A stretch of 64,000 nucleotides of DNA from Macrostomum lignano (taxonomy: Eukaryota), in contig NIVC01000236.1 of NCBI GenBank assembly GCA_002269645.1, forward strand, positions 526,882 to 590,881, given 5' to 3'. The notes beneath the pieces were generated by a model. That model was not told the origin of the DNA, searched no databases, and saw only the letters and a list, made by a program, of their open reading frames with translations. A program made the position numbers and the translations under genes. Shown here in pieces: positions 1 through 46,839 of this stretch; positions within the stretch are counted from its first letter, which is position 1; the number at the start of each line of letters is the position of its first letter.

Positions 1-3000
1 CTGCTGAAGCCTTGGCCTCCGCTGCGTCGGAGGGGGCGGCTGGGTGCGGCTCGACAGTAGCGGGTGGGGCAGCAGGTGTCGTGGATGTCGGCTGTTGGGC
101 TGCTGCGGTCGCTGGCTTAGCGGTGGCCCGCAGCTTGAGGAGGTCCTTCTGAACCGTCTGGCCATCGGCCGGCGGCTTCTCGATTGGCAGACCGCGACTG
201 GGCCGATGCGCTGGCCCGCTTAGCTGCGGCGGTGGCGACGGCTGGTGAATGCCGGCGGCTGCGGAACCGGCGGCGCTAGTTGAAGTCGCTGGTTTCTCAA
301 CGTGCACCTCCTCTTTCGTGTCCGGATTCACAATGGCCAGCCGCTTTCTTTCTCTTATTGGGGCCGCAGCCTCCTGTTGCTGCTGGCCAGCTTGCTGCTG
401 CTGCTGTGGCGCAGGCTGGTGCTGCTCAGGGCCGGGCCCGCCGTGCTGCATGAATGGCTGATGAGGCGCGGGGGCGGGTCCGGACGGGTGGAACTGAGCC
501 CTGGAGTGCAGCTGACCAGTCTGAGGCCGAGTGCCGCTAGCATAGGCGCCAGGCACGAACTGCTGAGGATATGCCGGATTTGGCTGCTGATGATGCGGCG
601 GCGGCGGCTGCTGCTGCATCGCCGGAATGCCGTAGGTTTGCGGGTTGGAGCCGGGGTAGTTGGCCATGGCGTTCCACGGCTGCATTGGCGGCTGTGTGGA
701 CGGGGTGAGTGTGGTTCAATAGAATTTCAGCGGTTTGAGCACGGCGGCAGCAGTAGAAATTATTAAAATTTGAAGCACAATATGAAGCAATTTTTTCTTT
801 AACTTCAATAATTTTATACCAAGTCCTCAAACTATTAAGAAACTCAAAGAAACTTAAGACAATTAAAATTATTCGAAATAAACAGTTATAAAATATAATA
901 ATTAACAGGCACTAAAATCGAGCTCATAAAACGAACAAAACAGCCGAGCGGCAGAAAAAGCACCGAAACTGGAACGGCCGGTTCTCACTTTTGCAATCAG
1001 CGGAGCGGCCATTGTGAACACCTGGAACTGTGGCTTTAAGCAGATTAAGAATATGTGACAGCATGGGAAAGATAGGGAGTATTCATACTAGTGTTTGCAC
1101 ACTTCAGAAACTTGCACCGACAATAGGTATAAAGAACCAACTTGGGCCTACTGTTTCTTAAAAAAACATTTTGGGTGCTGGTTTTGTGCGAAAAAAAACA
1201 GTGGAGATAGGCTTCTTTCCTACACAAAACGGCGATAGCTAATGCAGCCCTAAAACAGTTCCTCGTGCTTCTAATGATTTGTCCTCGCTGATATACACAA
1301 CTCCAACAGTCTGTTTTTAACTCACATAGCCTGGCGGAACTTGCGGGTGCTGCATGGGCATCATTGGCTGAACAGGCTGCTGCACATACGGCGCCATGTA
1401 CTGCTGCTGCATCGAGCTGGACGGAAACTGGCCTGGCATGTTGCCAGCTGGCCAGCCAGGCTGAAGAGAGCCGGCTCCCTGCTGCTGGTAGGCGGCATTT
1501 GGGTTCTGGCCATAGATCACCTGGGACTGCGGCTGTCCCTGTGAATACCGATAGTTCTGAGCCTGCACGTGAAAGTGGCAAAATGCTGTGCTGCAACCTC
1601 CAAGTTCTCCACAGCAGAGTTGATGCTGTTACCACAATTATAACCACAACTCATCAGCCATGGGTAATGTAAGTATTGTATGAAAAAAGTACTACAAAAA
1701 TTTGGTTGCTTACCAAGTGCGCACGATTTCCCTCTTGAAATTCCGTTTGATAAGGACCTAAATGAATAAAATATATCAAGTTTGTAAAATTATGAAAATC
1801 AATATAGAAAGAAATGGAATCTCAATATCTTACCTTGGATATAAGGGCTGTTTGGAGAGTTAGTTAATTTTGGCAGTTAAGGAAAATAAAGAACTTTAGA
1901 AAAAATAGTCACATTTATATGCTAGCTTTTTAATTTTAAATTAAGTTAACTAATCTATAAGCTATTAACCTAAAAACTAAATTATCTTACAGTATACTTG
2001 TTTAAGTAAAGCTAATTCAATTATCTCCTAGCTTGTGTTTTATATATAGCTACTTAGATTATACATTTGTTTTTGTAACATTTTCAGTAGTCTCATATGC
2101 CTAATTGCCAAAGAGAAACAATATTAATTGTTTAAATAAATATTGCTTTTATAGACCATGAGCTTTAAAATTGCCTTTTATTTATGAGATATTCATTAGG
2201 CAAGCAAAACTTGAAAAAAAGAATAATTTCATGGCTAATAATAAAATAATAATAATAATAATAATAATAATTGTTTATTATACCTGCCCTAAGAGATATG
2301 CAACCAATAGCTTAGTAGCAACTATTATGTAGCACATCTAAAGGGTATATACATAGCTATTTAGTTCAAGGACTAGGAAGTTGCCATATATACCTTTATT
2401 TATCTTGGCTAATGTTGGTACCCATGTTATAGGGGTCTCCCTAAAACACGCCCTGCACCACTACACATTCAAACAAATTAGACTATAACTGAAGACACTT
2501 CAAAATGTGTTTTATGTTAAGCTTTAAAGTTTTTTTATTAAATTTAGTTTTTTACTTTGAAATATAAAATTCGGTGAATAATAAGTGATATTAATAATAA
2601 TATTAATAAAATAATAATAATATAATTTAATAATGAAAATGAGAATATAAAAAATAATAATATTTATAATAATAATTAAAGATACTTATTCCATTACTCT
2701 TACAACAAATAGTTTTCCTTGCAATCAAATACTGCATTGACAAAAATTTTATAATGTATAGCAGTTTGGGGCAGTGCAATGCATGTTTTAGGAAGACCCA
2801 TGTTATAGCTAGGCAAATTGAAACAATATATAGTTAAATGTCTTGCTTAAGGACACAAATTGTTACAAATAAGTCAGAAATCCAAGCCTCAACCTTTTAG
2901 TTATAAATCTAGCATTCTAACTATAAGGCTATAACTTTTAGCCTTGTAACTAAATACTTGGAAAAATTGTTTTATTAATATATTGGTAAAGATCAAATTA

Positions 3001-9890: not shown

Positions 9891-10570
9891 ATGATCATCA
9901 ACACGCTGAAGATCGAGGTGCTGACTGTGCCGGCCGACATTCCAGACCTTTTGACGTGCCGCGGCGCAGACGCGCAGACGACCAAGCTCGCACGCTGCCA
10001 GCGGTTCACCTACATCAGCGGTCTGGTGCCCCACGTGGAAGAGGACCCCCGCCAGCGCAGAGGACTTGCCTGGGCGGCCTTTCGTTCGATCCGAGCCGTC
10101 CTCCAGTCCGAAAGCGCTGCCTGACCGCCAGAGGGCTCGGCTGTGGCAGGCGGTGGTCGAAACCGTCCTGCTATACAACGCCGAGACGTGGACGCTGACG
10201 GCTACGCTAGAGCGGCAGCTGGACTCGGCGCACTCAGGGCTGCTCCGTGCGGCCTTTCGAGCTGACGAGAGCGTCGGGACCGAGGCCCTGTACGATCGGG
10301 CCAAGCTGCAGCGCCCGTCCATCATCCTGCGCCGGCGGCGACTTCAACTGGCGGGCCACGTGATCCGGGCCGAGGGCTACTGCCCCCAACCTGTTCGGGA
10401 CGTCCTGCTGCTCACCTTGCAGGGTCCGTTCAGGGGTTTCAGGCCTGAACCCGTCGATACGTGGACTGCCTGCTGTGCGATGCTGGGGCGCCCGACACTG
10501 CCAACGGAGCGGACTTTGTTCGCTCCCAGGCTCTGCGGCGCGCCATCTGAACCGCCCTGTTCTAACTGTG
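9891..10570 (+). mobile_element. 5'-truncated RTE-type LINE (C-terminal RT region), frameshifted
   Basis: Translations FTYISG..RRGLAWAAFRSI and RARLWQAVVETVLLYNAETWTLTATLERQLDSAHSGLLRAAF..RRRRLQLAGHVIR are typical of the RTE RT C-terminus. Confidence 0.85.
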
Positions 10571-11099
10571 ACCTTTGCTTGCGGGGCCGCGTATTTTGTT
10601 GTTATTTTTGTTGTTATAGAGTTTTTGAAATTTAGTACTCTCGTATATGAAAAATCTTTTTTTTCATATCCATTGTGCATCACCAACAGAAGTCAACCTT
10701 TAATTTATAACTTAAAACGCTTTCGTACCATCTACCATTTGCCGTTTACACATAGCCAAACTACATTCATTCTATGTTCACAAGTTTCCACTCCGAAAGC
10801 AGTGGTCAAGATTTCTCAGATCGCAGCTAGAAGTAAAATGAGTGCAATGATCCTGCAGGCTGCAGTTCAAGAGTAGGACTCAAATTAGCGCGGGTAAAAC
10901 AAACTCAAGTTCCTATGCAGAACTGAAAAGCTGCTTCTCAATTAGCCGCTCAGGTTGTATGGACTTGGAAAGGTTTTGAGAGTTTTTAATTGTAATTTTG
11001 CATGAGCGCTGGCGTTAACCGTTGGCTCTAAGTCTGATGTCGGCAGCGGTGCACTGCAGACAGGTATGAATTTGCATGTACACCAGTCACCATGCTCAT

Positions 11100-12926
11100 G
11101 TGAATTCATATGCCTTTTGTGTGCCTACGTACGCCATCATCGGCAGGCAGAGGAACACTGGGATTGACGTCCTGCGAGTCTGGCCACCACCGACAGCCGG
11201 CCAGCAGGTGCTGCAGGTCGCTGACGGCTTTCTCAGCGACACGAGATCTAGCGGAGTGCTCCAAGGACATATCGAGGACATCGGCAGGGTACTGCGTAGC
11301 ACGCCAGCGTGTTCAGTGGCATCGGCTACTTCACCGGGCCGCTTCATCCACATCCACCTCACCGACAGCGCCCACCCGGTCTGCCATGCACCGTCGAAGG
11401 TGCCGATCCACCTGGCAGGCGCGGTAGAAAAGGAACTTCAGCTGCTGGAACAGCTCGGGATCATCAGGCCCGTCAACGCAGCGGCACCGTGGGTCGCGCA
11501 GATGGTCGTCGTGCCCAAAAAGAGCCGGGTGAGGTGCGCATCACATAGGATCCCCGCAATGTCAACCGCTACGTCATCCGCGAGCGGCACCAGATTCCGA
11601 CTTTGGAGGAGGCGACCCGGGACATGGCCAGCAACGATAGCGGCGACGCAAGGGGGCCGGTGGGATACGGTCGCTCTGCGCGCTGCGAGAGGAGCTGTCT
11701 GCGGTGGACGGAGTTCTCCTTTGGCACCAGCGAATCGTCGTGCCAGCTGGTCTCGGCAGCAGATGCTCGAATTGGCCCAACCAAGGACATCAGTGCTCGC
11801 AGAAGATGATCGCCAGGCTCAGTGTGGTGGCCGAGGATGGCAACTTCGCACACACCAGCCGTTCGTGCTACGCCTCTGCAGCCGACGCCGATCCCCGTGG
11901 GCGCCTGGCTGTTGATCGGCGCCGACTTCGTAGGACCCATCAACAACAACATCGCTTCAGGATCCCGCAGGAGCTCGTGATAGACAATGGACCGCCCTTC
12001 TCTTCCAAGGAGTTCGGCCGGTTCTTGGCGAGCTACGGGACCAAGCACCGCCTCATCACGCCCTAACTACCCATCGGCCAACGGCATGACCGAGCGACTC
12101 AACTCCTCCATCAAAAAATTCGTGCGAGCAGCCCTCGAGAAGCGGCGGAACTGAAGGGCCGCTCTGGACGAGTGGCTGCTGGCCTACAGGAACACGCCGC
12201 ACACGGCCACCGCGCGCGCACCAGCCGTTGGCCGGCGGCAAAACGACGTCATCCCCGCTGCCCGGCCATCCTAGCGAGTCCGCATCAACAAGCAGCGGCT
12301 AAGAGAAGCGGACACCGGCGCCAAGGCGGCACAACGTCCGGGTCGGTGCTACGATGGCGGGTCGGTGCCAGCAAGACGCAGACGTCATTCGAGAGCGGTG
12401 CCCGGACAGTCCAGCGAGCAACTCGCTGCTGCTACGACGGGATGACACGACCTGCTGGTGGCACTGCACGGCGGTCAAGGTCGTCAGTCCCAACTTGGCC
12501 GACGCTGGCGCCAGGCCGCGGACCGCTACACCGAGAGCTCCAGATGAGGCGAGCCGAGACCAACCCGCCTCCTATTCAAATATCTTATTTTCTCAATATT
12601 TTAATCTCCGCATTATCGCTGAGCCTTTCGAGTTTTGAAATTTTTTGTTCTTTTTAATCGGGTTTCTTCTCTCTCAGTCTCTATTTTAAGGGGGAGAGAT
12701 TTAGTGTGCGTACGCACGGCATGTCGGCCCAAGTGTACGCTGATTGGCTGGGGAGTGGGTGGGTGTCGCCACCCCAATTCTAACTTTACCATATATAAAT
12801 GCGTGCCCAGCGCAGCGAGAGTGTAAGAGTTTGGTGGCTTCACCGACTGGCGCTGTCTCAATGTCCTATGATGACATTGTCGTTCATGTACCTCTCGAGC
12901 TCGTTCGCTCAGATAGCTATAGTACA
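11100..12926 (+). mobile_element. Degenerate, internally deleted Ty3/Gypsy element with PPT and 3' LTR
   Basis: RT-start motif VPIHLAGAVEKELQLLEQLGIIRPV..WVAQMVVVPKK; integrase motifs IPQELVIDNGPPFSSKEF and WLLAYRNTPH; PPT AAGGGGGAGAGA at 12688-12699, followed by an LTR-like segment about 12700-12926 with TATATAAA. Confidence 0.8.
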
Positions 12927-22365: not shown

Positions 22366-25300
22366 CAGGGACAACTAAAACCCTCGGGACGCGAAACGAG
22401 CCAATTCATGGCAAAAAATCTGAGGGGCTCGCTTAAAAGTATTGTTCTATGGCTTTTTCAAGTCTTCTCTGCTATCAGGCATTAACGGTTAGATTAAATA
22501 GTAAAGCGAGGCAATGTCGAGTATTTAATTTAAAGAATAGGAACCAGTGATATAATTACAATGTAATTTACAATAAAGTAACCGCCATATCAACAAAAAA
22601 CTCCAACGGCAAGAAGATAAAAGATGAAAGCAAAGATATAACTCCAACGGCAAGAAGATAAAAGATGAAAGCAAAGATATAACTCCACCGGCAAGAAGAT
22701 AAAGGATGAAAGCGAAGATGAAACTCCAACGGCAAGAAAATAGAAGCAAATACGGAACTCCAAGGACAAGACGACACAAACAGTCAGTAGCTCGTACATA
22801 AAGGTAACGCTGGAACTTCACCTACTGAGCATCTAACTTCCGAAGCTTTCTATCATGGGATGTCGTCGGTATTGGTGGGAGTTTTGACGAGCGTCTTACT
22901 AGTCCTTTGAAAAAAACGTTGGCTAGCCGACGGGACACTGTCCATGCTGAACTGTGTCTTAGTTGGAAAGTAAAAGTCCTTAATAACATAAAACAGCTTC
23001 TGCACGCGAGTTGCGCACGTAGGAGAGTGCAGAATAAAACTGCTGTAGCAGAGACAGGATAAGTCTAACAGCCATTGTGGAGGATGACAAAGCTTTCCGC
23101 GAGATAACTCTTCAGTGAATTCGCTGGCTGGAATGCTCGTCTCTGATATCAAATCTGTTCCTTTGATGCCTGCCTTCTTTAGTCGCTGTATAACCTGTCA
23201 ATTTCCAATTAAGCACGGTTTGAATTGTTTTTTATGAGATTGTGTAAAACCTCGTTGTGAATTAAATTTTAATTAATATCCAGCTTACCTGCGATATAGT
23301 GTAGAGCGAAGCCATCTCCGAAATGGAAAGCTCCTCTGATTTAGCGGCACAATTATCAATGGTCGCCAGTTCAATTTCATTCAGCTGTTCATTGCAACAT
23401 TTGCTCCGATCGTGCTTGTAGTCTGCTAATTCAAGGGATGCCAATAATTTCATTCGTCGGAGTCGAGCACTGAGCAGCACTTGCTCCACAGATACATAGT
23501 AGTTGCCGCCGCTCATTTGGCGATATACGCCAGCCAGCCAGCAGAACGTAGCTGATTCGTGGGTCGGACAAAAGAACCTCACACATCTCACAGGCTCCGC
23601 GCAGTGAGTTTACTAGCGCTGACTTGGTCTCGGGCGTCAATGAATGATGGCGAGCTCGGCCTTTTCCACAATGTGTCGAATCAAACGAATCCGCGAGCGC
23701 GCTAAGAAATTGTATGCTTTCATCTTGAACGGAATAGACTGGTCGCCTGTCCGGATCCCGTAGTCGTGCGTGTAGATCAGGATTTTTACAATTGACAATT
23801 TTCCAGAATCTCACTATGGTTTTGATAAATTCCGCAGTGTCTGAGTATCCATCACACTTCAATGCAGCGGCAACCCTTTCATCGAGAACTTGGAGAGCGA
23901 GACTGACTTTAGTTTTCTGAGTGCTTGTGGGATAACAGGCCTCATGAGTTAGACATGTGCGCTTGACTACGTGGTCTTTCTCCATTTGGTACAGGCGTAC
24001 CACGTCTGACCATTTAGCGGATATCTGTCTGTCAGCGCCAGGAGGTTGAATGCTTAGAATTCCATTCGCTTCCATTTGCCAATTGTTGCGAATGCATTTG
24101 ATAATGTGAACGAAATCGAACAGCATGAAGAATTCCGACTCCTGTGCAGCATCCGTTCCAATCCATGGCTTCTCTCTTCCATCGCTAAATAAAGCAAAAC
24201 ACTTGCGGTTGGTCGGGTGATTGTCGCTGACGAGAGCAACGACACGGCTACCGTTGTTGTTAATTGCTTTAATACATTGGCTGACGCATTTTCGCAGAAA
24301 CTCCGCAGACAAAATGTATGTCGGCAATAGTCGGACTACAAACAGTTTTCCACCAAGTAATGGCTTTACCATTATGGCCAAAATTGTCCTAGCAACCTGG
24401 TCCGGATCGAACATATTACGCAGTTTCGCTGAGCTCCTGATAGACTAGCAAAAACTGACTGGATCACATCGGCTGCGTCGGTTTCTGTGCCAACTTCTCC
24501 TGTACCTGCTAGTTGCAGCTGCAGCGTTCGGGGATGAGGCAATGGCAATAGCTTCCGTAGGTAAGAGTAAGCCGAACTACTGATCAAGTAGAGCAATGCT
24601 GACTGTCGCACTAGTGAAATGTCATAGCGGCGATTGTTCCGATTTACTAATGTAAGGCTAAGTTGTCGAATCAAAAACTGAAGCGACCGATCCAAATCAG
24701 AGTCAGAATCTATATCGTCACTGATTCTACTAACAAACGCTTCGACTTCACGTTGGGGATTGGCGTCGGAATTTTTGCACCGCACGACAACAGCATCCAG
24801 TTGCGACCAGCGCTTGAGTGTCGGTTGAAATCCCAACAAGTCTCGAACCGAAATCGGTGTATGCAGTTTGAATGCACGAATCAGAAAGTTGGGTGAGACA
24901 AAAATTCGAACAGACAGGTCTCCATCTTTATCTAACGTAAACAAGTAAACGTCTTCGTTCAGAATAGCTGTGTTCAGTGCATGTCGAGATACGACATCCG
25001 AATTTTTCACCTCAGCTCGAAAACTTTCCCATGCCGGCAAAAAATCAAGCAGCTGAAAAGCGTCCATCTCATCGATGTCGCTGCACCTCGCGTCAGAAAG
25101 AACACCGCGCTTTTCGGCCTGTCGGTCTTGGTCTAAAATAAGAGTAAAAATAAAAGTAAGATAATTGTGAGCGGCAAAATCGATATAGACGCTAAGTGTT
25201 GAGCAATCTTTAAGTTACGTACCTTGGTTCTGAACAAAACACGAGCTAGGAACTCCATTAAAAACAGAAGGAGGATTAATTGGCCTTTTGGTAGAGTTTT

Positions 25301-30170: not shown

Positions 30171-33100
30171 ATGAATAACCGGCACCAACAAGACTACCAA
30201 CAACTGTATCCTTTCTAACTAGGGCCTAACTTTCTATTATTAACTGCTGCGAAATTAACTTCATGTTAAACTGTTAACCCTTACAGTTTGTAATTGATTT
30301 TTCAATAATCTTTTTTGCTTTTATTCTACTACTATTAATAATACTAAAGATTATTTATTTGGTTAACCAACAAGCAACATATTAATAGTTAATAACTTTG
30401 AACAAACTGACTTACTTTAATACCTACTAATTGATTTAGGATGGTTCTTAGTCTTAGAAATATATTTCTAGAATTATTTGGTTAGCTATTAGTATTAGTT
30501 AGATTATAATAATGAATGTCTATTTGTTAAGTATTGTATGCTTAAGTTGTCTTAAGAACTTTAAAATTTAATTTTGCAATATACTAGGAGTTGACTTTAA
30601 TTCTACCACCAAGCTACAAGTTATGATAAAGATGTTTTTTCTTACTATAAGTATCTTAAAACTTAAAAGATATGTATGTATGTGCATAGTAGTTCAACTT
30701 AAAAAAATAAAGAGCAACCTGTGCTCAAATTCATATCTATGGCCAAGCCATAGCATCTTCCCCCTTTAGTTAATTCTGTTCAGGTCACGTCCTAGTCAGC
30801 CTTTCCCAATTAGGTCCTGTAGAAAACTCTTGGTTTCTATCTCAGTCTTTGGCTACGCCTTGGTTTGGGGCTGCACTCTGGCTCCGGTGATTGTGTTGGC
30901 TTGTCCAACTCAGCAATCTTTTCTGGTAGCGACTCCTAGGCCTGGTCCTAATTGACTTGTAGGGGTCTCTGGTCTGTAGCCTATTCACCCTTTGGCTCAT
31001 CTTGCCAAAATGGTAGCAATTAATTGAAGTGTGCCTTTTTGAACTTTGGATTTCTTTGTCCGTCTTGATCATTGCCATGCTTCTCCCTATTAGGAGAACA
31101 ATCTTGGCTGGAATGGGTGCGTCGTGCAAGTTTTTGTAGAAAACCTCGTCCTGTAGGTTCACCTCTCTGGTAGTGAAGGGAACTTGCAACTTCTGACTAA
31201 ACATGAGCTCTGCTGGAGATTCTCCTGCCCTGTTGCTAGATGATCAGTAGAATAGAAAAATGCAATCGATGGTCTTTTGGCTGAATCCATTCACTTTTAT
31301 TCCTTCTTTGATTGTATGAACGAAGCACATTGCAGTACCATTACTTTGCGGATAGTAGGCAGATGATGTCAGATGTGCGCAATCAATCCCTTTGAACCAT
31401 TCAGTGAACTCGTGACTCACAAAACTTGGACCATTATCAGATATAAGCATGCAAGGAATTCCAAATTGAGCAAATGTTCTCCTAAGTCTCTGTATTACTG
31501 TTCAGGCTGTCATGTCATTTCTGATATGCACCTCCAGGTATCCAGAGAATGAGTCCATAATCACCAACAGATATTGTCCCTAAATCAGGCCAGCAAAATC
31601 AATATGGTTGCAATCTCATGGTCCTGATGTCTCTGGCTACAAAGTGTAAAAATTTTGATTAGACAGCTTTGCCATTTGACATATCTGACACTTATTGATA
31701 GCACTTTCTATGTCCTTATCTATTGCTGGCCACCAGAACTCTATCCTTGCTAGCAATTTCAATCTGGCAATACTCCCTATAGAAAAGTTGTAAATCCGCG
31801 GACAGCGTCCGACGCACTTTAGAAATTTTTTTAAAGTGCGGTGCACGCACAGGCGCGCAGTGCCTGCATGCGCTGCCTTTTCTTGCTGGCTACTGCTCTA
31901 GCAAATACATATGCATGGAAAGGGGTCATCTAATACCTCTGTGGAAGGGGCCTATACACTTATAATTTATAAAGCTTAGAGATGTTCCAAAATTTCAATT
32001 TGAATTTTCCAAAATTAGAATTTTTATTAAGAGCAAATTTCAATTTCGAATAAAATTAGAACTTAAAATTTGGAAGCGTCTAAAAAATTGCTAAATATAT
32101 ACTAATTTCTGCTACATATACATGTATTTCATTTTGCATAAGCAGTAAATTGAATGTAAAAAGTGAGCATTGGTCATACTAAACTTTGTTTTTCTGCATT
32201 TTGATTTTGGAAAATTTCAATTTTGAATTTGGAAAGTTAACAAATTTTGATTTCAAGGAAACTGCTCTTTCAGGACATCTCTAATAATCCTAAAGCGCGG
32301 GAAAATAATTTGACTTTATTCTAAAGCACGCGTCTGCGGGTTTTCAACATTTATTCTAATAGGGGCAATACTAAGGTGGGTCTAGTGAACTAACTGCCTT
32401 GATTGCTCTAGCTCTCAGTGATCTTGGAATAACCATTCATTGTCCTTGTAGAATCACTCCAGCTTGCGTACTCAACTTTCCCTAGACATACTTATGAAGT
32501 TCCTTGGCACTGAAATCCTCCTGGACAATGGCCTTCCAGAGCTGAGACATTTCAGTGCATCTTCGTGTGGCTGAATTAACTTCCCTGTACGATAAAAGAT
32601 TCTCTGGCAGGTCCACATGGCCTATCTCCAGCGTTGTTTTGTTCTCTTGTGCAATCACCATTCGGGACAGAGCATCAGATATCATGTTTTTTGTTGATTG
32701 ATACTCGATCTTGTAATCATATGCTGTCAGGAAGATGGCCCATCTCTGCAGTCTAGCCAAAACTTGCACTGGAAGTTCCTGGTCTGCTGCTAGTAAGAAG
32801 ATGATTGGCCTGTGATCTGTAATCTGTTATGTCCTAAGACAGACCAGCCAGCTTCGTCTCGCACTCTGTACAAGCAGGGAAACTCAGCCCCAGTCCTGCT
32901 GCTTGCCAACCCACTATTGCACAAATGCGCAGGCAGTAGGCTGGCAACCAGGGTCGCAGCAAATGCACAGGCCCTGGTGACGATAACCTAATCAGGGGCT
33001 AAGATCTGAGGAAAGTTGACCATTGGTTTTGGGATAGAAACTTTAACATGTTGCTAAGTGTATATAGTTTTTATATCTATACATGTAGCATTGTCTAAAT

Positions 33101-36100: not shown

Positions 36101-39100
36101 TGATAAGCAATCGGGTGTTTTGCCAATGTTATTGCTCCTTCTAGGCTCAAATTCAGAATCACGTTGTCTACTTTCAGGCTGCTTATTTACGTCAGCATCC
36201 ACGGTATTGAGTAGATCAGGTGGTTTGTCCGGTTTTTGGTCGTTCTACCTCCTCCAAATTTGGGCTTTGAGTCATCATGTCCGACGGATAAACCAAGATC
36301 AATTTCGACTGTCTGCAAAGGTATTAGGTCTTAGCAGCAATTTTAGTATATTAGATATGCTCCAGAACCTTGGTTGATAAAGACGTCGCCGAATACGAGA
36401 AACTTATGATCTTTGTTCATCGCAATGTCTACAGTAACGCGTTCGAGAAATGCCTCAAAGTCGGCCCAGCTACTCTTACTTAGATTGGCAGTTACTGTCC
36501 TCCATTCTGTATGCGGAAGTTTCTGCTTTTCTTCGAGCAGCTGCTCATACCCGCCTCGTCACCGTTTCTTCCATTAAAGAAAAAATTCCTGAACATGGGG
36601 CTTCGAAATGTGATAATTTCTATTGAGATTGAAGCCCACTCACCCTGTCCACACAGCCGCAAATGCAGCCGTGGAACGCCATGGCCAACTACCCCGGCTC
36701 CAACCCGCAAACCTACGGCATTCCGGCGATGCAGCAGCAGCCGCCGCCGCCGCATCATCAGCAGCCAAATCCGGCATATCCTCAGCAGTTCGTGCCTGGC
36801 GCCTACGCTAGCGGCACTCGGCCTCAGACTGGTCAGCTGCACTCCAGGGCTCAGTTCCACCCGTCCGGGCCCGGCCCTGAGCAGCACCAGCCTGCGCCAC
36901 AGCAGCAGCAGAATCCGAACACTAAGGAGGTGCACATGGATAAACCAGCGACTTCAACTAGCGCCGCCGGTTCCGCAGCCGCCGACACTCACCAGCCGTC
37001 GCCACCACCGCCGCAGCTAAGCGGGCCAGCGCATCGGCCCAGTCGCGGACTGACAATCGAGAAGCCGCCGGCCGATGGCCAGACGGTTCAGAAGGACCTC
37101 CTCAAGCTGCGGGCCACCGCTAAGCCAGCGACAGCAGCAGCCCAACAGCCGACATCCACGACACCTGCTGCCCCACACGCTGCCGCCGCTACCGTCGAGC
37201 CGCACCCAGCCGCCCTTTCAGCAGCAGTGTTCGCTCCCGCCGCCCAGCCCGAGTCGAACTCCATTAAGCTTTCACCGCTAGTTCAACCAAATTTCAAGCC
37301 GGAGCCGTCGACTAAGCTGGACAAGAAGCTGAAGTACGACCGAGACTTTCTGCTGAGCCTGCAGTTCACTGACTTAAGCTGCCAACGGCCCCAGCTGCCG
37401 GGCGACATTCCTGAGCTGCTGCCCAGAAGCGACTCTGTAAGTGCTTGTGAATTAGCCAGTTGGGTTATACAGTACAATGTGTCTGCACCTGCACATCAAA
37501 AATTTCAAAATTGTGGTTAGGATTTTACATAAGCAATTTATTGCTTTGACGTGGCCAATATGTTTATCTTTTTACTTTATCATAAAAATAAGGCCAACAG
37601 CGAGTGGACCGCAATAACGACGACTCACAAGGCACAGAAAATGGACGCTCACAAGATGGTCGTCGGCAGCAACCAGGAGCAGGGCCAGTCACAGACTCGG
37701 CTCGGCTATGCGACCTCTCAGGTCCCGGCGCGCTGTCCACCCGCCCTGGAGGCGTCGTCAAGAAAGGAACTTACATACTCGTATTTGCAAGAAGAATGTT
37801 GTCAGCCTTTTTCGGAACTGGTCAGGATTTTGCCTTTTGCTCACTTGGTTTTCGAAACTCTTGAGTTATAGCAATCGACTGGTAATTGTCATTTATTTTG
37901 CAGCAGTGCTTCAAGTCTGAGGCAGATGTTGACTTCAGCGGTTGCCCAGTGACTCCTGATGCCGAAGAGCTGGCCGAAATCGGGCTCAAGATTCGACCGA
38001 TATTCGAGTCTCTTGATCAGTCTAACTTGGAGTCCAGCTTGCAGCAACTGAAGAGCTTTTATGAGCTCATGACACTGGCTGGTCTCTGGGCCTGCGCTGA
38101 CGCAGTCTACCAGAAGGTCAGCGTTTAATTTATTTTGAACTCCTAAATGTGTCTTTCTTACCTTACCTCACCTCATAACTCTTGGAAGTTGGAAACTGAT
38201 CAGCGTGCAAGAATTTTCGGCTTTTCTTTCTTTGCTACTCGTTTAGTAGGCGATCTAGTTTGTGATTAACTTTTCTGTTGTTTTTTTGCGACAGGCAACA
38301 GGGAAAAGGTCCGACGCAGGCTTGTGCGCCGAGTTCAGCAGCCAGCTGGTCCATGTAAGTTGAGCATTTCTGAACCTGTAATGCTGTTCTTTGTATATCT
38401 TGTTATGATGCTGTCTTCTATCCGGCCACGATCTTTTTGTAGTTGAAGGCAAATTTTCAAGGTGCGTCGAATGATGGCCACTGGCAGTTTGTCAGCTTTA
38501 AGTCCCTGCTGATGCACAAGTGCCAAGAGGCGTTGCGAGCTCCTTTGATTGAGCAGTTGGCGCGAGTGGCAGCTCATTGGCAGTCGAAGATTGACGCGGA
38601 GGTCTCGGATGACGGCAAGAAAGTGTTGGAGGAGCGGACAGACGAACAGGTGAAGGACGCGAGGACCCGGTACTACGGCAATATAGTGTGAGTTCGTGCA
38701 GATGATGACCTGTCAGATTTGTGTTGCGCAAGCATTGATAAGTTAAGGAGAATAAATACTTATAATCCTTCTGTATTGCCAAAAAGCTTCTGAACTTTTG
38801 TATGTAAGTTAGTCACGATACAACAGGACGGACTGTAACTGAGCTTGAATTTCGGTTATTTGTCGGTCTTGTTAGTCTTGCTAGTCAGGTTGCACATGAG
38901 GTCATGAGTCATGTGAAATAATGAGACAGCTCTTCTGGTCCAGAAAGTGAGAAGATGATCAATTCGTGCAAACAAACCATAATTCCGATCCCCCGATCTT
39001 TCCATTACATTGACTTTACAGTTTCGTTGGCGAGCTCTACCTTCGAGGAGTCCTGCCGGTTGCCGAGGTGCACCGCGGCATCCAGTCGCTGCTGAAGTCG

Positions 39101-42100
39101 GAGTCCTACAGCTACAGCGACGGCTCGCTTGCCGACTCGCTCGAGTGCCTCTGCGACCTGATGAAGATAATCAAGAACAAGCTGATAGACGAGGGACAAC
39201 ATAGCGCCTTGGACCGGTACTTCAGCGACCGGTACTTCCGTCTGATTCGCAATGACATTGTAGCGCCCGAGACTCGAGTCCGGCTATGTGAGATTGTCGG
39301 CACAAGGGGAGTGCAGAGCGCAGGAGGGCTGCGGGCACCCTGGCGCAACGCCTTCAGCGACATCGTCCCACAACCAACGGTGAGGCGATTTTGTCCATTC
39401 TGCTGACTCCTGAGCATGCAAGCGCGCCATACTGTACTCAAGCACGCACTCATGCACACGCTCAGGGTGTACGGTGGCCCTGACTTTCTAATGTCTTGTC
39501 TTTCCCTGTCTGTGCCTTGGAGGCTCATGGGCGGGAATCGCATGACAAGCCCCTGGCCAATTTTCATACACAGGCCGCGCGTTTACCGCTGAGCTGCTCA
39601 GCCACGGTTGCTTTAATTTATTGGCGAGTAGTATGTTTTGTTTCTTTAGTGCTCAGTTGGCAGTGCGGTCACCCAGTCTACTCAAGAGCATATGCAGCTT
39701 GGTCTGAGGCGCACAAGTTCACCGCCTGGCATTTAGTGAATTTGCCAATGGAAACTGGCGCACAGGCAAAGTACTTTGACTGTGCGACCATCCTCAGTAA
39801 TTTTCTTTGTTATTTGCGATATTTTTAAACCACATCGTTTGATGTACATTTGAGAGTCATCTTTAACTCTTGAAGTACGGGTCCATGAGATTTGCCCGTC
39901 GAGATTTGCCCGCAGTGCAATTTTCCTGCAGCGCTTTTGGTCACGTGACAGATATTTTCTGCACGCCCCCAATGCTTAATAAGTCTTAATAAAGAGATTT
40001 ACCCGATAAAAAAGTTTCGATAGTGACAGCATATCAATGCATCTTTTTCGTGTATGTATTCGTTCTATATACATGAAGGGTACATCTACTCAGCACAGCT
40101 GTTGCTACAAGCGTAAATTCCGATTTCGCGTTTAACTGGTACATAAAATTTTCCCGCTATTTCTGGGGCACCCTCCTCTGGTACTGATGTAAAGTTTGTC
40201 TTTCACTACTGCGACTGAAGATTTACCTTCTCAAATTCTCAAAAAATTTTTAAGCAGCAACCGCCGCCTCGAACCGTTCACGTCTTCGACTCCACGCCTA
40301 CTTTCGTGGCGCAGCCGAACACGTCCTACAGATCTCAGCCGAAACCGGCGCCCAAGCCGCTGTTTGTGGTTGAATTGCGGAAGGACAAGGTCGACCTGCG
40401 CAAGGCCGACTGTCCCTACGTGCCCGGATTCCTGCAGAAGAAGCCTGACGACCAGGAGCAGCTCAAGAAGGAGAAGACCGAGCGGAACATTCGGTCCATC
40501 CTGAACAAGATTGCTCCGCAGAACTTTGAGTCCTGCTTCTCTCAGCTGACCACAACCTGCGATATCGGCAGCATCCAAGGTCTCAATGCCTGCGTTGACA
40601 TCATCTTTGAGAAGGTATGGGAGGACTCTAATGCATTGCAGTGGTCTGTACTCCACCTATCCTGACTGAATTGTCTATGCCTTGTATTAAATATTTCAGT
40701 CCACTCGCGAAATTCTTTATTCATCTGTTTATGCTGAAATCTGCAAGCGACTGGCATTTGTGAGCCCCAGTGTATTTATTGACTGGTAGAACTCATTTAG
40801 AAAATCGTATATTTGGATATGCTAACTGACTCCAGGACACTACAAAACCTTTTTTCCAGCTCAAGGTGAGTTTTCCCGAGCAGTCTCAGGAAAATAAACA
40901 GTTCATCGGTTTCCGGTCTCTGCTGCTGAAGAAATGCCAGGAAATGTTCGAGACTCCGCTGAAGAAGCAGATGGAGCAGAAGGGGGCGCAGTGGCAAGAG
41001 AAGATCGACGCAGAAGAGAAGGAAGACAAGAAGAAGGCGCTGGAAGAGGAGAGGGACGAGCAGATGAAGAAAGCAAAGGACCAATATTACGGGAACATCA
41101 GGTGAGTTTCTGTTAGAAGCTGGGTTAATAAAATGGGGTCCTTTATTGTGTATTGTGTGATTTCATGCTGCCTCACTGCAGATTCATCGGCGAGCTGTTC
41201 ATGAAGGACATCCTGACGGCAAACATCATCCATCAGTGCATTGTATCACAGCTGAAGTCAGACCACAGCAGCAAGAGCATGTTCACGGAGTCGCTGGAGT
41301 GCCTGTGCGAGCTGCTGAAGACAGTCGGCAAAAAGCTGGAGAGTGAGAACAACTCCAAGGCTCGAATCGACCAGTACTTTGAGCGGATCAAGAAGCTGAT
41401 CAACAGCAAGGAGATCGAGTCGAAGGTTCGGTTCCGCCTGCAGGACATCGTAGAGATGCGACAGCGGAACTGGGAGCGGCGCGAGATGGAGATTCGGTTG
41501 CACGAGAGGCCGATGACGAAGGAGGAGCTGGAGCAGAAAGCCAGACAGGAGTCGCGGAAGCAGCAGCTGGCAGGCATGCAGCAGCAGCAGACTCGAGGTG
41601 GCCGGCAGGGCTGCTTCAGTCGGCCACCTGCCTGGCCAACCCCTGCGGCCAACAGCGAGTGGACCGCAGTAACAACGACTCGCAAGGCACAGAAGATGGA
41701 CGCCCGCAAGATGGTCATCGGCAGCAGCCAGGAGCAGGGCCAGTCACAGACTCGGTTTAGCTCGTCTCGAAAGTCGTTGGTGGCCAAGGCAAGGCCCGGC
41801 GGCAAGGATGACGGAGGCCGTGGCACGCCGAGGTGAGAATATTCTGAGCATCCGTGGTATAACCTATTATAGGAAAGAACATAAAATGGTTTCCACCTAT
41901 ACTAAATGTCTAAGATTTGTCGTATACTAAAATTCAGAGAATGGAAAACACTGTCTTTGATTCTCGACGTCCTCAATTAGTTTTCCTGTTCTGGACCTCA
42001 GAAATGTTTAGAATTTGCTAAACACAAACTCGCTCCTCCGCTAGGCTGGGCAGTCAGAAGAACTCGCGAGAGTCCAGCGCCAGTCGTGGCACCAGTCGGG

Positions 42101-44738
42101 AGGCCTCGCTGCACCTGGATCCGCAGCAGCTGCAGCAACCCGCCGTGGCAGCGTTGGCGGCCTCCGGCAAGATGCCGCGCTCTCAGTCCAGCCAGGAGCT
42201 GCCGGCGCGGGCCGTTGAGTCGCCACGGTCCGTTGAGCCGCCGCCGATACCGCGGGACGTTCTGGAGCGGAAGAGCAAAAACATAATGATGGAGTGGCTC
42301 GGCTCCCTGTGCTCGCTAGAAGTAAGCTCTTGCCTTGCATGAATGTGTCTGAAGAATCTGAAGCACCGCATCCTCTCCCTCACCTTCTTCCATTCAGGAC
42401 ACCAAATCCAACTTCATTGAAATCTCGCGTCACCCAGAAATCAGCGCCTTCGTGGAGGTGAACGCGGAGCACCTGCTGAATGAAAACAGCAAAGAGCTTC
42501 GGGAGAGGGGCGGCCAGCTGCTCTTCGAGTTGCTGCACAGCGAGCTGCTCAGCTCGAAAGATCTTATTGAGGGGTGAGTCTGGGCAAAGTGATGAAGCTG
42601 CTCACCGCGATGCGTCAGCAGGATGAATTTTGGAATTACCGTCTGACCCGGTGAGGCCCCCGAGGCCCCCGGCTGACGAAGTTTTTGCTGTCTGAAGCTC
42701 GACGCGATCCCAGCTGTCAGGAGCCTGGGAGGCCCAGCTGTCAGAAGCCTGGGAGGCCCAGCTGTCAGCAGCCTGGGAGGCCCAGCTGTCAGCAGCCTGG
42801 GAGGCCCAGCTGTCAGCAGCCTGGGAGGCCCAGCTGCCAGCAGCCTGGAATTACCGTCTGACCCGGTGAGGCCCCCGAGGCCCCCGGCTGACGAAGTTTT
42901 TGCTGTCTGAAGCTCGACGTGATCCCAGCTGTCAGGAGCCTGGGAGGCCCAGCAGCCCAGTCAGCAGCCTGGGAGGCCCAGCTGCCAGCAGCCTGGGAGG
43001 CCCAGCAGCCCAGTCAGCAGCCTGGGAGGCCCAGCAGCCCAGTCAGCAGCCTGGGAGGCCCAGCTGCCAGCAGCCTGGGAGGCCCAGCTGCCAGCAGCCT
43101 GGGAGGCCCAGCAGCCCAGTCAGCAGCCTGGGAGGCCCAGCTGCCAGCAGCCTGGGAGGCCCAGCTGCCAGCAGCCTGGGAGGCCCAGCAGCCCAGTCAG
43201 CAGCCTGGGAGGCCCAGCTGCCAGCAGCCTGGGAGGCCCAGCAGCCCAGTCAGCAGCCTGGGAGGCCCAGCTGCCAGCAGCCTGGGAGGCCCAGCAGCCC
43301 AGTCAGCAGCCTGGGAGGCCCAGCTGCCAGCAGCCTGGGAGGCCCAGCTGCCAGCAGCCTGGGAGGCCCAGCAGCCCAGTCAGCAGCCTGGGAGGCCCAG
43401 CTGCCAGCAGCCTGGGAGGCCCAGCAGCCCAGTCAGCAGCCTGGGAGGCCCAGCTGCCAGCAGCCTGGGAGGCCCAGCAGCCCAGTCAGCAGCCTGGGAG
43501 GCCCAGCTGCCAGCAGCCTGGGAGGCCCAGCTGCCAGCAGCCTGGGAGGCCCAGCTGCCAGGAGCCTGGGAGGCCCAGCTGTCAGAAGCCTGGGAGGCGC
43601 AGCTGTCAGCAGCCTGGGTGGCACAGCGGCTCTGGGCCCTGGGTTGTGAATTGATTATAGTAGATTGCAGACTCCCACCCATCATCCGCTCCCCCGCAGC
43701 TTCTCACCCATCATGGAGATGGCGGACGACTTCCTGTCGGACTTCCCGCTTCTGTCCAGCTACCTGGGAGAGATTTTCTCCTCCTTTGTGCAGAAGGCGG
43801 CCTCCTACCTGTCCTGCGTGCAGCAGCTGGTGCTGAGGATCCCCGCCGACCTGCGAGACTCGAGCCGGCGACCTCTGCGGGGCGAGGTGGTGTCGCGGGC
43901 GCTGCACCTGGCCAGCGGGCGGCTCGACCACGACCGGGTGGGCGCGGCGTTCCGGGAGGCGGGGATGGCGTGGCACAGCCTGCTGGAGCTGCCGCAGGCG
44001 GACGCGGCGGACTTCGTTGCAGCCAACAAGCTGGAGTTCACTCTGCATGAGACGACGCTGTCGCCATCGCCCATCGCCCTGGACGTCGTCGGCGAGCGGA
44101 TCGAGCAGAAAATCGGCAACGCAGACGGCGACGCCTCGGCGAAGGACCTACTGTCCGAGGAGCTGATCGCCCTCATAGAGAAGGAGGTGGACAAGAAGCA
44201 GATGGAGTCTCGGGAGTTCATCCGGGTTCTCGTGCGAAGCGTTTGTCGCGGCTGCACTCGTGAGTGGGCAGTCGGTGATGTGCATTTGCAGTGATGGGGC
44301 ATCTTTATGGCAGGTCAGTTGTGACTTGAATTCTCACACTTTGCAGAGAGCAAGAAGCTGAACAAGCCGCTGTTCCTGCTGGTTAAGCCAGTCCTTATGC
44401 GGCACATTGAGACCCATGAGCAGCAACAGCAGTGGGTTCTCAGCGCCACCTGCGACACCATAAAGAGTGCAGGCCTTTCACTTGGTGAGTTTTGCTTTGC
44501 TGGTAGCAATGCTCTGACCTTTCTACTCACTGTGCTTCAGTAGTTTCAACTGCGCATTCCTTCCAAATGCACTGCAGAGTTGATAAACGACCTCTTCTTC
44601 GCCTACCTTGATAACGCAATCATCTGCGAGGACTCGTTCAAGCAGTGGTACCAGGAGGCCGGCAAGGAGCTTCAGGACGCCACTCAGGTGTTTATTAACA
44701 CTCTGGAGTCCACGCACAGCCCCAGCACTGACTCCTAG
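30171..44738 (+). CDS. eIF4G: eIF4G paralogue A. Exons 30171-30205, 33944-33957, 34034-34077, 34232-34468, 36657-37436, 37904-38116, 38295-38354, 38443-38687, 39022-39379, 40315-40614, 40700-40759, 40860-41101, 41182-41832, 42045-42321, 42398-42573, 43700-44259, 44347-44484, 44578-44738
   Basis: The exons sum to 4551 nt (1516 aa plus stop) with compatible phases. eIF4E-binding motif YDRDFLL at 37335-37355; MIF4G (RSILNKI..FIGEL..ESLECLCELL..RFRLQD); MA3 region; W2 region (IICEDSFKQW). Confidence 0.93.
30525..32850 (-). mobile_element. Gypsy remnant (RNase H to integrase, PPT, 3' LTR) inside the eIF4G U12 intron
   Basis: RLQRWAIFLTAYDYKIEY, RLKLLARIEFWWPAIDKDIE, LISDNGPSFVSHEF..YYPQSNG. PPT at 30756-30767 is followed by TGCTATGG; the LTR end at about 30525 is approximate. 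Confidence 0.85.
31775..32364. mobile_element. Non-autonomous DNA element with 8-bp TSD, containing a nested MITE (about 31977-32283)
   Basis: TSD GCAATACT at 31767-31774 and 32365-32372; imperfect TIRs CCCTAT...ATAGGG; nested TAGAGATG...CATCTCTA element. The insertion interrupts the integrase HHCC region. Confidence 0.8.
34522..35765. mobile_element. Solo LTR-like insertion (1244 bp) in an eIF4G-A intron
   Basis: TGAGGTGGG...CCTACCACA flanked by the 4-bp TSD CATT (34518-34521 and 35766-35769). The empty site is present in paralogue B at about 1273-1276. Confidence 0.85.
34583..34738. repeat. 63-bp-arm inverted repeat inside the solo LTR
   Basis: Arms 34583-34645 and 34676-34738 have about 4 mismatches; the loop contains the palindrome AGTCACGTGACT. 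Confidence 0.92.
37593..37700 (+). repeat. Recent 108-bp duplicate of eIF4G coding sequence from about 41650-41757
   Basis: 8 differences in 108 nt by manual alignment, all transitions. Confidence 0.9.
42631..43620. repeat. Intronic GC-rich minisatellite (24/30-bp units) plus a 215-bp-period direct repeat
   Basis: Unit CAGCTGCCAGCAGCCTGGGAGGCC; TGGAATTACCGTCTGACC occurs at 42631 and 42846. Confidence 0.92.
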
Positions 44739-45905: not shown

Positions 45906-46839
45906 ATGTTCCGCCGTCCGCTTTTGCCGTCTCGAGTTCCGCCGCTTCTCTTGCTGGCCCTGTGGCTGCTGCTGGCCGGGCCGGAATTCGCTGTGGCCGA
46001 TCGATCGCTGTGGCTGGAGTCTGACAGCCAATGCGGAGCTGTCCGGCTGTCTGTGAGCAGCCGCGGTCTCGTGCAGTGCCTGTACGAGTGCTCCATCTTG
46101 AGCTGGTGCCTCTGCGCTCGCTTCGCAGACTCCGAGTGCTCCCTGATGCTTCCCGGCGGCGAGGTGTCGCCCACAGCTGCCGGGCTGGCCGCTGCCGGGA
46201 CCGTGTACAAGAACCAGCAGTTCGATTGTGAGCAAAGGGGCATAAGATATGGCTATTCATGCATCTGTTTACATGCAGTCATCATTTGCACGGGTGATGT
46301 ACAAAAGTAGCGAAAGCCTAGTGATCTGATTCATCTGATGGTCTGCATCTATAGTATTTGTATCTCTGTTGCTTCAAAAGGGGGAAGTGCCGTTCCCAAT
46401 CACTCCAATAAGCCAGCAGTTCCACCTTTTATTGCTTTTAGTCTCCAGCATCTGCAAGCTGCCGCTCTCCGGCTGCGAGCAGAGCACCGTGTATTCGACC
46501 GGCAACCTGTGCGGCAAGGCTGCTGACGGCAACGTGGCCCAGGCGTTCTCGACTTGCTTCTGCACCGAATCCGGCGTCAACGAGTGGTGGGAGGCTGGCA
46601 CAGCTGACCCGGCCTTCATCACTGAGGTGACGCTGTACAACCGCGGCGACTGCTGCCCGCACCGGCTCAACAACTTCGTCATCACGGTGGACGGCGTCGC
46701 CTGTGTGGACTTCGTCACCTCAACCGCTTTCTCGGTGCGGAACTTCACCTGCAACATGGCCGGCCGCAGGCTGCGGGTGACCAACCGGCTGAACGGGCAC
46801 CTCACCTTCTGCGAGGTGGTCGCTTACGGCTACATGTGA
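45906..46839 (+). CDS. Secreted protein with a Cys-rich PAN/apple-like segment and an F-type lectin (fucolectin) domain. Exons 45906-46227 and 46442-46839
   Basis: Signal peptide MFRRPLLPSRVPPLLLLALWLLLAG; QCLYECSILSWCLC; AADGN..WW..EVTLYNRGDCCPHRL..LTFCEVVAYG*. The phase-1 junction is compatible. Confidence 0.82.

Follow-up and report, generated by a model that had tools for sequence, protein, structure and literature searches.

The window analysed here, a stretch of 64,000 nucleotides (nt) that forms the terminal 64 kb of the Macrostomum lignano scaffold NIVC01000236.1, contains an eIF4G gene (BOX15_Mlig022532g1, hereafter gene A) with a deposited product (PAA87386.1; 1617 amino acids, aa) labelled "hypothetical protein" in GenBank. 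Four exons of this gene (the cassette) encode a second, diverged MIF4G domain (MIF4G') located between the eIF4E-binding exon and the canonical MIF4G domain. We consider it likely that the cassette goes back to an ancient event in which the MIF4G (HEAT1) exons were duplicated in tandem within the gene, and that its fold is under selection, its eIF4A surfaces are altered and its exons are spliced in frame into the message. Cap-dependent initiation is built around eIF4G as its central scaffold, in which eIF4A, RNA and viral internal ribosome entry sites dock on a single HEAT1/MIF4G domain.

Gene model and exon structure of the cassette

PAA87386.1 mapped onto the window residue for residue (100%) in 18 exons, cassette included, with its domains in the order eIF4E-binding (4E) motif, L' segment, MIF4G', canonical MIF4G, eIF3-type linker and MA3. 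A first-pass annotation of this DNA had placed the four cassette exons at coordinates that recur exactly in the deposited coding sequence, where they lie downstream of the eIF4E-binding exon and upstream of the canonical MIF4G, in frame with both. Each of the four has a pyrimidine tract and AG on its 5' side and GT on its 3' side. The same annotation had described the inserted block as four exons; all four stand, and the block in the deposited model comprises five, with an extra exon (L') preceding them. It had also given the canonical exons as 40315-41832, of which the end agreed and the start did not; following the deposited model we corrected the start to 40258, and the 19 codons gained in this way have their homologue at the beginning of the matching exon in a paralogue. 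The features of gene A, all on the forward (+) strand and numbered from the first letter of the window, are:

36657..37436 (+), e1, Q/P-rich N-terminal exon, ending in phase 0 (PAA87386.1 residues 117-376)
37335-37364 (+), eIF4E-binding motif YDRDFLLSLQ inside e1 (read from the sequence)
37593..37820 (+), L', extra inserted exon of 228 nt, phase 0 at both ends (PAA87386.1 residues 377-452; self-BLASTN)
37904..38116 (+), cassette exon 1, 213 nt, carrying GCPVTP (a degenerate form of the site-3 motif) and IRPIFESL (first helix)
38295..38354 (+), cassette exon 2, the conserved 60-nt exon
38443..38687 (+), cassette exon 3, 245 nt, ending in phase 2 within YYGNI(V)
39022..39379 (+), cassette exon 4, 358 nt, with FVGEL, SLECLCDLM and RVRLCE and a new donor that restores phase 0
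40258-40614, 40700-40759, 40860-41101 and 41182-41832 (+), canonical MIF4G block and linker, 1310 nt, ending in phase 2
41647..41755 (+), L, the source copy of the motif duplicated in L', within the long canonical exon
42045-42321, 42398-42573, 43700-44259, 44347-44484 and 44578-44738 (+), MA3 and C-terminal exons, to the stop codon

When spliced, the cassette forms 876 nt (292 codons) with no stop and with intron phases 0, 0 and 2. The other five frames contain 1-16 stops each, and a stop-free sequence was obtained in 0 of 20000 shuffles. The encoded domain has 38% identity to the canonical domain over 276 aa (BLASTP; E 2e-56). It passes the Pfam MIF4G family (PF02854) by itself, at 38.7 bits against a gathering threshold of 30.8 and over model positions 3-197 of 203, and it scores 111.7 bits on a profile built from 30 non-Macrostomum eIF4G MIF4G domains. 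The cassette, the canonical block and the paralogues Mlig018935g1 and Mlig006204g2 all have introns at identical positions, which interrupt FEK/ATRE (the 60-nt exon), SF/LKV and GNI(R)/FIGEL, and this identity at four places indicates a genomic exon duplication. The open frame of 292 aa, the phases, the shared 60-nt exon and all four motif pairs proposed in the first-pass annotation (canonical and cassette RSILNK/RPIFES, YYGNIR-FIGEL/YYGNIV-FVGEL, SLECLCELL/SLECLCDLM and RFRLQD/RVRLCE) were recovered exactly.

The rest of gene A resembles a conventional eIF4G. The eIF4E-binding motif (Y-x4-L-hydrophobic) is present as KYDRDFLLSLQ, and the canonical domain contains IRSILNK and VRFRLQD and scores 96.9 bits on Pfam MIF4G. 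The MA3/HEAT2 domain is a marginal match (PF02847; 23.8 bits, cut-off 23.2). For W2/HEAT3 there was no Pfam W2 match at E <= 0.1, and a C-terminal region of suitable length is present.

The Mlig_3_7 annotation in GenBank was built from RNA-seq and transcriptome assemblies only, using StringTie, TACO, a mapped de novo transcriptome and open reading frames (ORFs) from TransDecoder, with unit boundaries cut at trans-splice and poly(A) evidence (PMC5730564). Because of this, PAA87386.1 provides indirect but real evidence that the cassette exons are transcribed and spliced in, and the public RNA-based gene model indirectly indicates their expression. An older, independent UniParc model of 624 aa (UPI0007A16EE9), placed in the same 90% cluster as PAA87386.1, also reads through e1, L' and the cassette.

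Selection, age and paralogues

Selection has kept the reading frame of the cassette and its MIF4G HEAT-repeat fold. In simulations of neutral evolution from a canonical-like ancestor, the frame was open in none of 4000 runs at a distance (d) >= 0.45. The G+C content of third codon positions (GC3) was 0.705 in the cassette and 0.766 in the canonical exons, compared to 0.39-0.43 in the surrounding introns. We also simulated passenger drift, in which only stop codons were rejected, up to the observed nucleotide distance of 0.445 (n = 400); against the family profile the products reached 6.7±7.8 bits (maximum 35.6), compared to 111.7 for the real cassette, and their identity to the canonical domain was 0.27 (maximum 0.317), compared to the observed 0.40. 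The AlphaFold2 model of the cassette, from an alignment of 21 sequences, was all-helical with paired helices throughout (predicted local distance difference test, pLDDT, 87.7; predicted template modelling score, pTM, 0.86). The best Foldseek match to this predicted fold was human eIF4G HEAT1 (8HUJ_B; template modelling score, TM-score, 0.80; E 9.7e-10), followed by the MIF4G of DAP5 (4IUL), and the best sequence match in the PDB was 1HU3.

Cassette identity was 38-40% to the canonical domains of gene A and Mlig018935g1 (gene C), 34% to that of Mlig006204g2 and below 31% to every other eIF4G retrieved. In a neighbour-joining tree the cassette had a very long branch and grouped with A and C at 65% bootstrap, its place inside the Macrostomum clade having 84%. 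By the Nei-Gojobori method, synonymous (dS) and nonsynonymous (dN) distances were 0.114 and 0.038 between A and C, 1.39 and 0.556 between the cassette and A, and 1.21 and 0.546 between the cassette and C, and for A compared to Mlig006204g2 dS was saturated (proportion of synonymous differences, pS, 0.77) with a dN of 0.381. By these dS figures the cassette duplication has at least ten times the age of the recent one between A and C. The pS of the cassette to A and C (0.60-0.63) is below that of A to Mlig006204 (0.77), and judged from these sequences the duplication probably came after the split from the Mlig006204 type. Three-point branch lengths from Kimura-corrected protein distances were ~0.97 for the cassette and ~0.14 for the canonical domain, a rate about sevenfold faster in the cassette. 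The first-pass annotation had called the duplication old and selected. Both terms are borne out, the first by a dS of ~1.2-1.4 against 0.11 between the recent paralogues, the second by the open frame, the GC3 and a profile score far above stop-free drift.

The single-MIF4G state is seen in Mlig006204g2 (PAA87740.1; 1477 aa; locus L002), which has a plain 1-kb intron where gene A holds L' and the cassette, and no cassette remnant was found in this intron between e1 and MIF4G. Tandem MIF4G is thus not general in the lineage; the opposite outcome, generality, is what the first-pass annotation had said would refute its reading. Gene C (PAA94720.1; NIVC01000003.1, locus L001 9790-13712) is a 5'-truncated copy. 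Its homology to gene A starts ~70 base pairs (bp) upstream of canonical exon 1 (L001 ~9790, equivalent to window ~40186-40196). Just ahead of MIF4G it has an in-frame TAA and then a new ATG (L to M), and a search of 10 kb of upstream sequence found no remnant of e1 or of the cassette. Without the 4E-binding motif, its predicted product is DAP5-like. A further paralogue (gene B) is situated at the start of the window:

34..1933 (-), paralogue B, inverted copy of the gene 5' exons, 91-96% identical, running off the window start before the cassette position

The copy of e1 in paralogue B (window 1-760, minus strand) is open and holds the segment APIRERKRLAIVNPDTKEEV, where gene A has a deletion and Mlig006204g2 reads KKILTFIDPRTNSAIEL. 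We take APIRERKRLAIVNPDTKEEV to resemble the PABP-binding motif of eIF4G. The M. lignano genome is neopolyploid, and among its eIF4G copies one combines tandem MIF4G domains with the lack of a PABP-type motif, a second is truncated at its 5' end and DAP5-like and a third is conventional; the gene family shows the diversification of eIF4G paralogues in such a genome.

The first ~109 nt of L' are 93% identical to 41647-41755 (self-BLASTN), and for the remainder of this exon no homologue was detectable. The copied motif is the conserved post-MIF4G motif ANSEWTAV TTTRKAQKMDARKM, which HMMER aligned to DDGGWNTV... of human eIF4G1 (chain 8OZ0_2, positions 851-875), equivalent to ~1047-1071 of human eIF4G1 with the offset derived from the MIF4G alignment. 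The eIF3-binding site of human eIF4G1 is 1015-1104 (PMC4949329). The motif maps inside this site, so the inserted block consists of a partial copy of an eIF3-site motif followed by MIF4G'. The L' motif copy is either far younger than the domain copy or homogenised with its source by gene conversion. We also asked whether the non-L part of L' could derive, with divergence, from the 5' end of a duplicated exon 1 and rejected this, since shuffled sequences did as well in local alignment (4115 of 5000 protein shuffles and 1884 of 2000 nucleotide shuffles scored as high). TBLASTN detected no relic of a duplicated linker in the intron 39380-40257.

eIF4A-contact residues and competing explanations

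At 79 columns the family is conserved (>= 70% identity in thirty other eIF4Gs); canonical Macrostomum domains keep 58 of these and the cassette keeps 35. The central repeats are retained in the cassette (KCQ, YYGNI.F.GEL, SLECLC.L, D.YF), and the losses cluster in the first helix (RSILNKLTPQxF) and in the C-terminal RFxLQD...W end. eIF4A contacts the eIF4G MIF4G at sites 1-3 (PMC9177959). Transferred to human eIF4GI from the yeast eIF4A-eIF4G structure, the contacts fall on R764/S767, T773, Q779/Q783 and D982, with S738 beside the site-3 Trp (PMC7470955). At these and neighbouring positions the cassette reads:

human S767: P
human N770 and K771 (the invariant N and K of SILNK): E and S
human T773: D
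human W735, the site-3 aromatic (Y in canonical Macrostomum domains): V
human F978: V (V259), with the preceding Arg (human R977) kept
human D982: E, a conservative change
the W after the last helix: S
human R766 and Q783: both kept

Over R764/S767/T773/Q779/Q783, N770/K771, D982 and the site-3 Trp only Q783 is identical, and the cassette does not follow the eIF4A-contact consensus. As far as sequence can indicate, this supports a degradation of the canonical eIF4A interfaces in the cassette. The first-pass annotation had pointed to a changed eIF4A-contact region, and RSILNK has become RPIFES, the RFxLQD end is degraded and the site-3 aromatic is lost. As a separate observation, the site-3 Trp (NAWKP in other animals) is a tyrosine in all Macrostomum canonical domains (ADCPYVPG, window 40384-40420), and the eIF4G-eIF4A interface of the Macrostomum lineage may be somewhat different overall.

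The sequence of events that we propose begins with a copy of the MIF4G exons that would have landed in a former phase-0 intron, the one leading from the eIF4E-binding exon to exon 1 of MIF4G. The duplicated domain has evolved several times faster than the canonical one, with frame and fold under selection, and has lost most family-conserved residues on both eIF4A-contact surfaces. We infer that MIF4G' no longer binds eIF4A in the canonical way and that it would form a structured extra module between the cap-binding and the helicase/ribosome-binding parts, as a new platform or as a spacer that changes the geometry. Taking the extra HEAT1, the duplicated eIF3-site motif and the loss of the PABP motif together, we suggest only tentatively that the module could have been re-purposed for another partner such as a different DEAD-box helicase, an RNA element or a regulator, and would in that case define a specialised eIF4F complex in a regenerating flatworm. 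The decoy or changed partner that the first-pass annotation proposed for the extra domain is a hypothesis suggested by the lost residues.

Several observations weigh against an ancient, selected and in-frame MIF4G' that has given up canonical eIF4A binding. The canonical Macrostomum domain itself departs from the human contacts (R764N, T773A, Q779S, W735Y), and loss of consensus contact residues in sequence does not prove loss of eIF4A binding. A rough time-averaged dN/dS for the cassette lineage, with dS split equally, is ~0.7, a crude value that is probably overestimated because dS is near saturation; a ratio this high implies that constraint is weak or episodic, and a recent loss of function is possible. 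The selection tests average over the history of a single cassette copy, and present-day constraint is a separate matter. Finally, inclusion of the cassette rests on models, and StringTie/TACO models can merge exons of different isoforms.

The splicing options were read from the exon phases. With phase 0 both at the end of e1 and at the start of canonical exon 1, L' and the cassette can each be present or absent, and all four resulting combinations keep one open frame. The frame is lost when the canonical block is skipped, or when cassette exon 3 or exon 4 is skipped by itself. Mutually exclusive use of the two MIF4G blocks is excluded, as the canonical block has 1310 nt (mod 3 = 2) and a stop at codon 686 follows when it is left out. 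The frame compatibility, with phase 0 at both block ends as is typical of skippable modules, would suit a true alternative cassette, where the main isoform skips the block to give a single-MIF4G protein and the tandem form is minor or tissue-specific (e.g., in germline or neoblasts). Both independent public models show only the inclusion form, and no skipped product was present among the retrieved M. lignano proteins, although clustered databases and masked self-searches could hide one; we regard this alternative, which the first-pass annotation had allowed for, as rather unlikely. Read-through of the donor at 39379 meets a stop after 8 codons with an AATAAA at 39988, and a short product of 4E motif and MIF4G' is no more than conceivable. 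UPI0007A16EE9 ends exactly at ...PQPT, and ~7% of the assembled M. lignano transcripts are multi-gene precursors (PMC5730564). The tandem architecture could on these grounds be an artefact of the gene model, with the 4E motif, L' and MIF4G' on one transcript and the canonical part on another through intronic polyadenylation or a precursor unit. However, the canonical block has no ATG before mid-MIF4G and so cannot be translated alone, its exon 1 from 40258 has as its homologue in Mlig006204g2 the exon next after the 4E exon, and an annotation that cuts at trans-splice and poly(A) evidence left the unit whole (PMC5730564). UPI0007A16EE9 has neither a start Met nor the tail of 8 read-through codons and is thus simply a fragment. 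An artefact of this kind is very improbable.

Two further explanations accept the exons and dispute the role of the domain. Constitutive exons that precede an essential downstream part would be purged only of stops and frameshifts, and a functionless domain could drift there as an in-frame passenger, in keeping with a cassette lineage ~7 times longer than the canonical one and a dN/dS of approximately 0.7. Such drift yielded 6.7±7.8 bits (maximum 35.6 in 400 runs) rather than 111.7 and an identity of 0.27 rather than 0.40, and the cassette has a confident AlphaFold2 model and retains GC3 of the coding type, all of which leave the passenger with very little probability. Human eIF4G has more than one eIF4A-binding HEAT domain, and the extra domain could still bind eIF4A or another DEAD-box helicase, with two helicases held through two HEAT1 modules. 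The retained predicted fold, R766, Q783 and the acidic residue at D982 are consistent with this. On the other side, S767 has become P in the cassette and S767D/E in human eIF4GI abolishes the binding of wild-type eIF4A1 (PMC7470955), the invariant N and K of SILNK and the site-3 aromatic are lost, F978 is V and the end W is S. We consider retained helicase binding unlikely and favour a selected MIF4G' with altered eIF4A surfaces.

Comparison with related proteins and surrounding sequence

Like canonical metazoan eIF4G (human eIF4GI/eIF4GII; 1HU3, 8HUJ), gene A has the YxxxxLL motif, HEAT1, an eIF3-aligned linker and MA3, and both of its MIF4G copies match eIF4G HEAT1 best by sequence and predicted fold. 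It differs in its tandem HEAT1, the first without the SILNK/RFxLQD consensus, in the linker motif duplicated upstream, in the absence of the PABP-type motif kept in paralogue B and in the lack of a Pfam W2 match. UPF2 likewise has tandem MIF4G domains in one polypeptide, three in number, of which only one is reported to have the classical partner binding (PMC3936715). It belongs, however, to another family and to the nonsense-mediated decay pathway, its repeats are ancient and eukaryote-wide rather than a lineage-specific exon duplication, and its domains are distant fold matches to the cassette (E > 0.03). DAP5/p97/eIF4G2 is likewise a specialised eIF4G relative with a MIF4G diverged in partner use, but it is a separate gene without the 4E-binding region, whereas gene A adds a diverged domain to an otherwise complete eIF4G.

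Among 197 eIF4G-like proteins fetched, a set enriched for multi-domain proteins, 35 had at least two long MIF4G matches. Many multi-MIF4G models come from plants, fish, a tunicate and a spider and have two or three domains with copy identities of 30-99%, several pairs being below 50%. Some are probably fused gene models or assembly artefacts and others may be real internal duplications. Models such as those of the spider Argiope bruennichi (RefSeq XP_055935271.1), the olive Olea europaea (RefSeq XP_022854892.1) and Clavelina lepadiformis (P0001) share with gene A the internal repetition of an eIF4G-type MIF4G, but most of their copies are 67-98% identical, which makes them recent duplications or model fusions, and they keep SILNK, whereas the Macrostomum pair has 38% identity and an asymmetric loss of contacts. 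The first-pass view that eIF4G normally has one MIF4G holds for Mlig006204g2 and needs qualifying in that multi-MIF4G models recur in databases. Our literature search found no paper describing a two-MIF4G eIF4G, Macrostomum eIF4G or Mlig022532, and no study of any multi-MIF4G eIF4G-like model. The protein itself is already public in GenBank as hypothetical.

Gene A offers a natural experiment on the roles of HEAT1 beyond holding eIF4A, and on the effect that the spacing between the cap-binding and the helicase/eIF3-binding parts has on initiation. Transgenesis is available in M. lignano, which makes the hypothesis testable. What limits the impact is that this is a lineage-specific feature, that the protein has already been deposited and that multi-MIF4G models exist elsewhere.

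Other features of the window lie around these exons. The intron in the MA3 region of gene A (42574-43699) contains a GC-rich tandem-repeat array, and the final 17 kb of the scaffold is filled with many more such arrays (at about 47.1-47.7, 48.6-49.1, 49.9-50.8, 51.6-52.2, 52.9-53.8, 55.0-55.9, 56.3-56.8, 57.3-58.0 and 59.4-63.3 kb; all by self-BLASTN). The next gene downstream (45906-46839) encodes a signal-peptide protein beginning MFRRPLLPSRVPPLLLL. Older ML2/UniProt models (P0028, P0176, P0177) fuse the eIF4G C-terminus to this gene and are probably read-through chimeras. Between the two eIF4G copies of the window are an annotated TNP-like (transposase-related) gene and retroelement-like ORF fragments (23431-24414 on the minus strand, 10000-12700 and 32482-32769).

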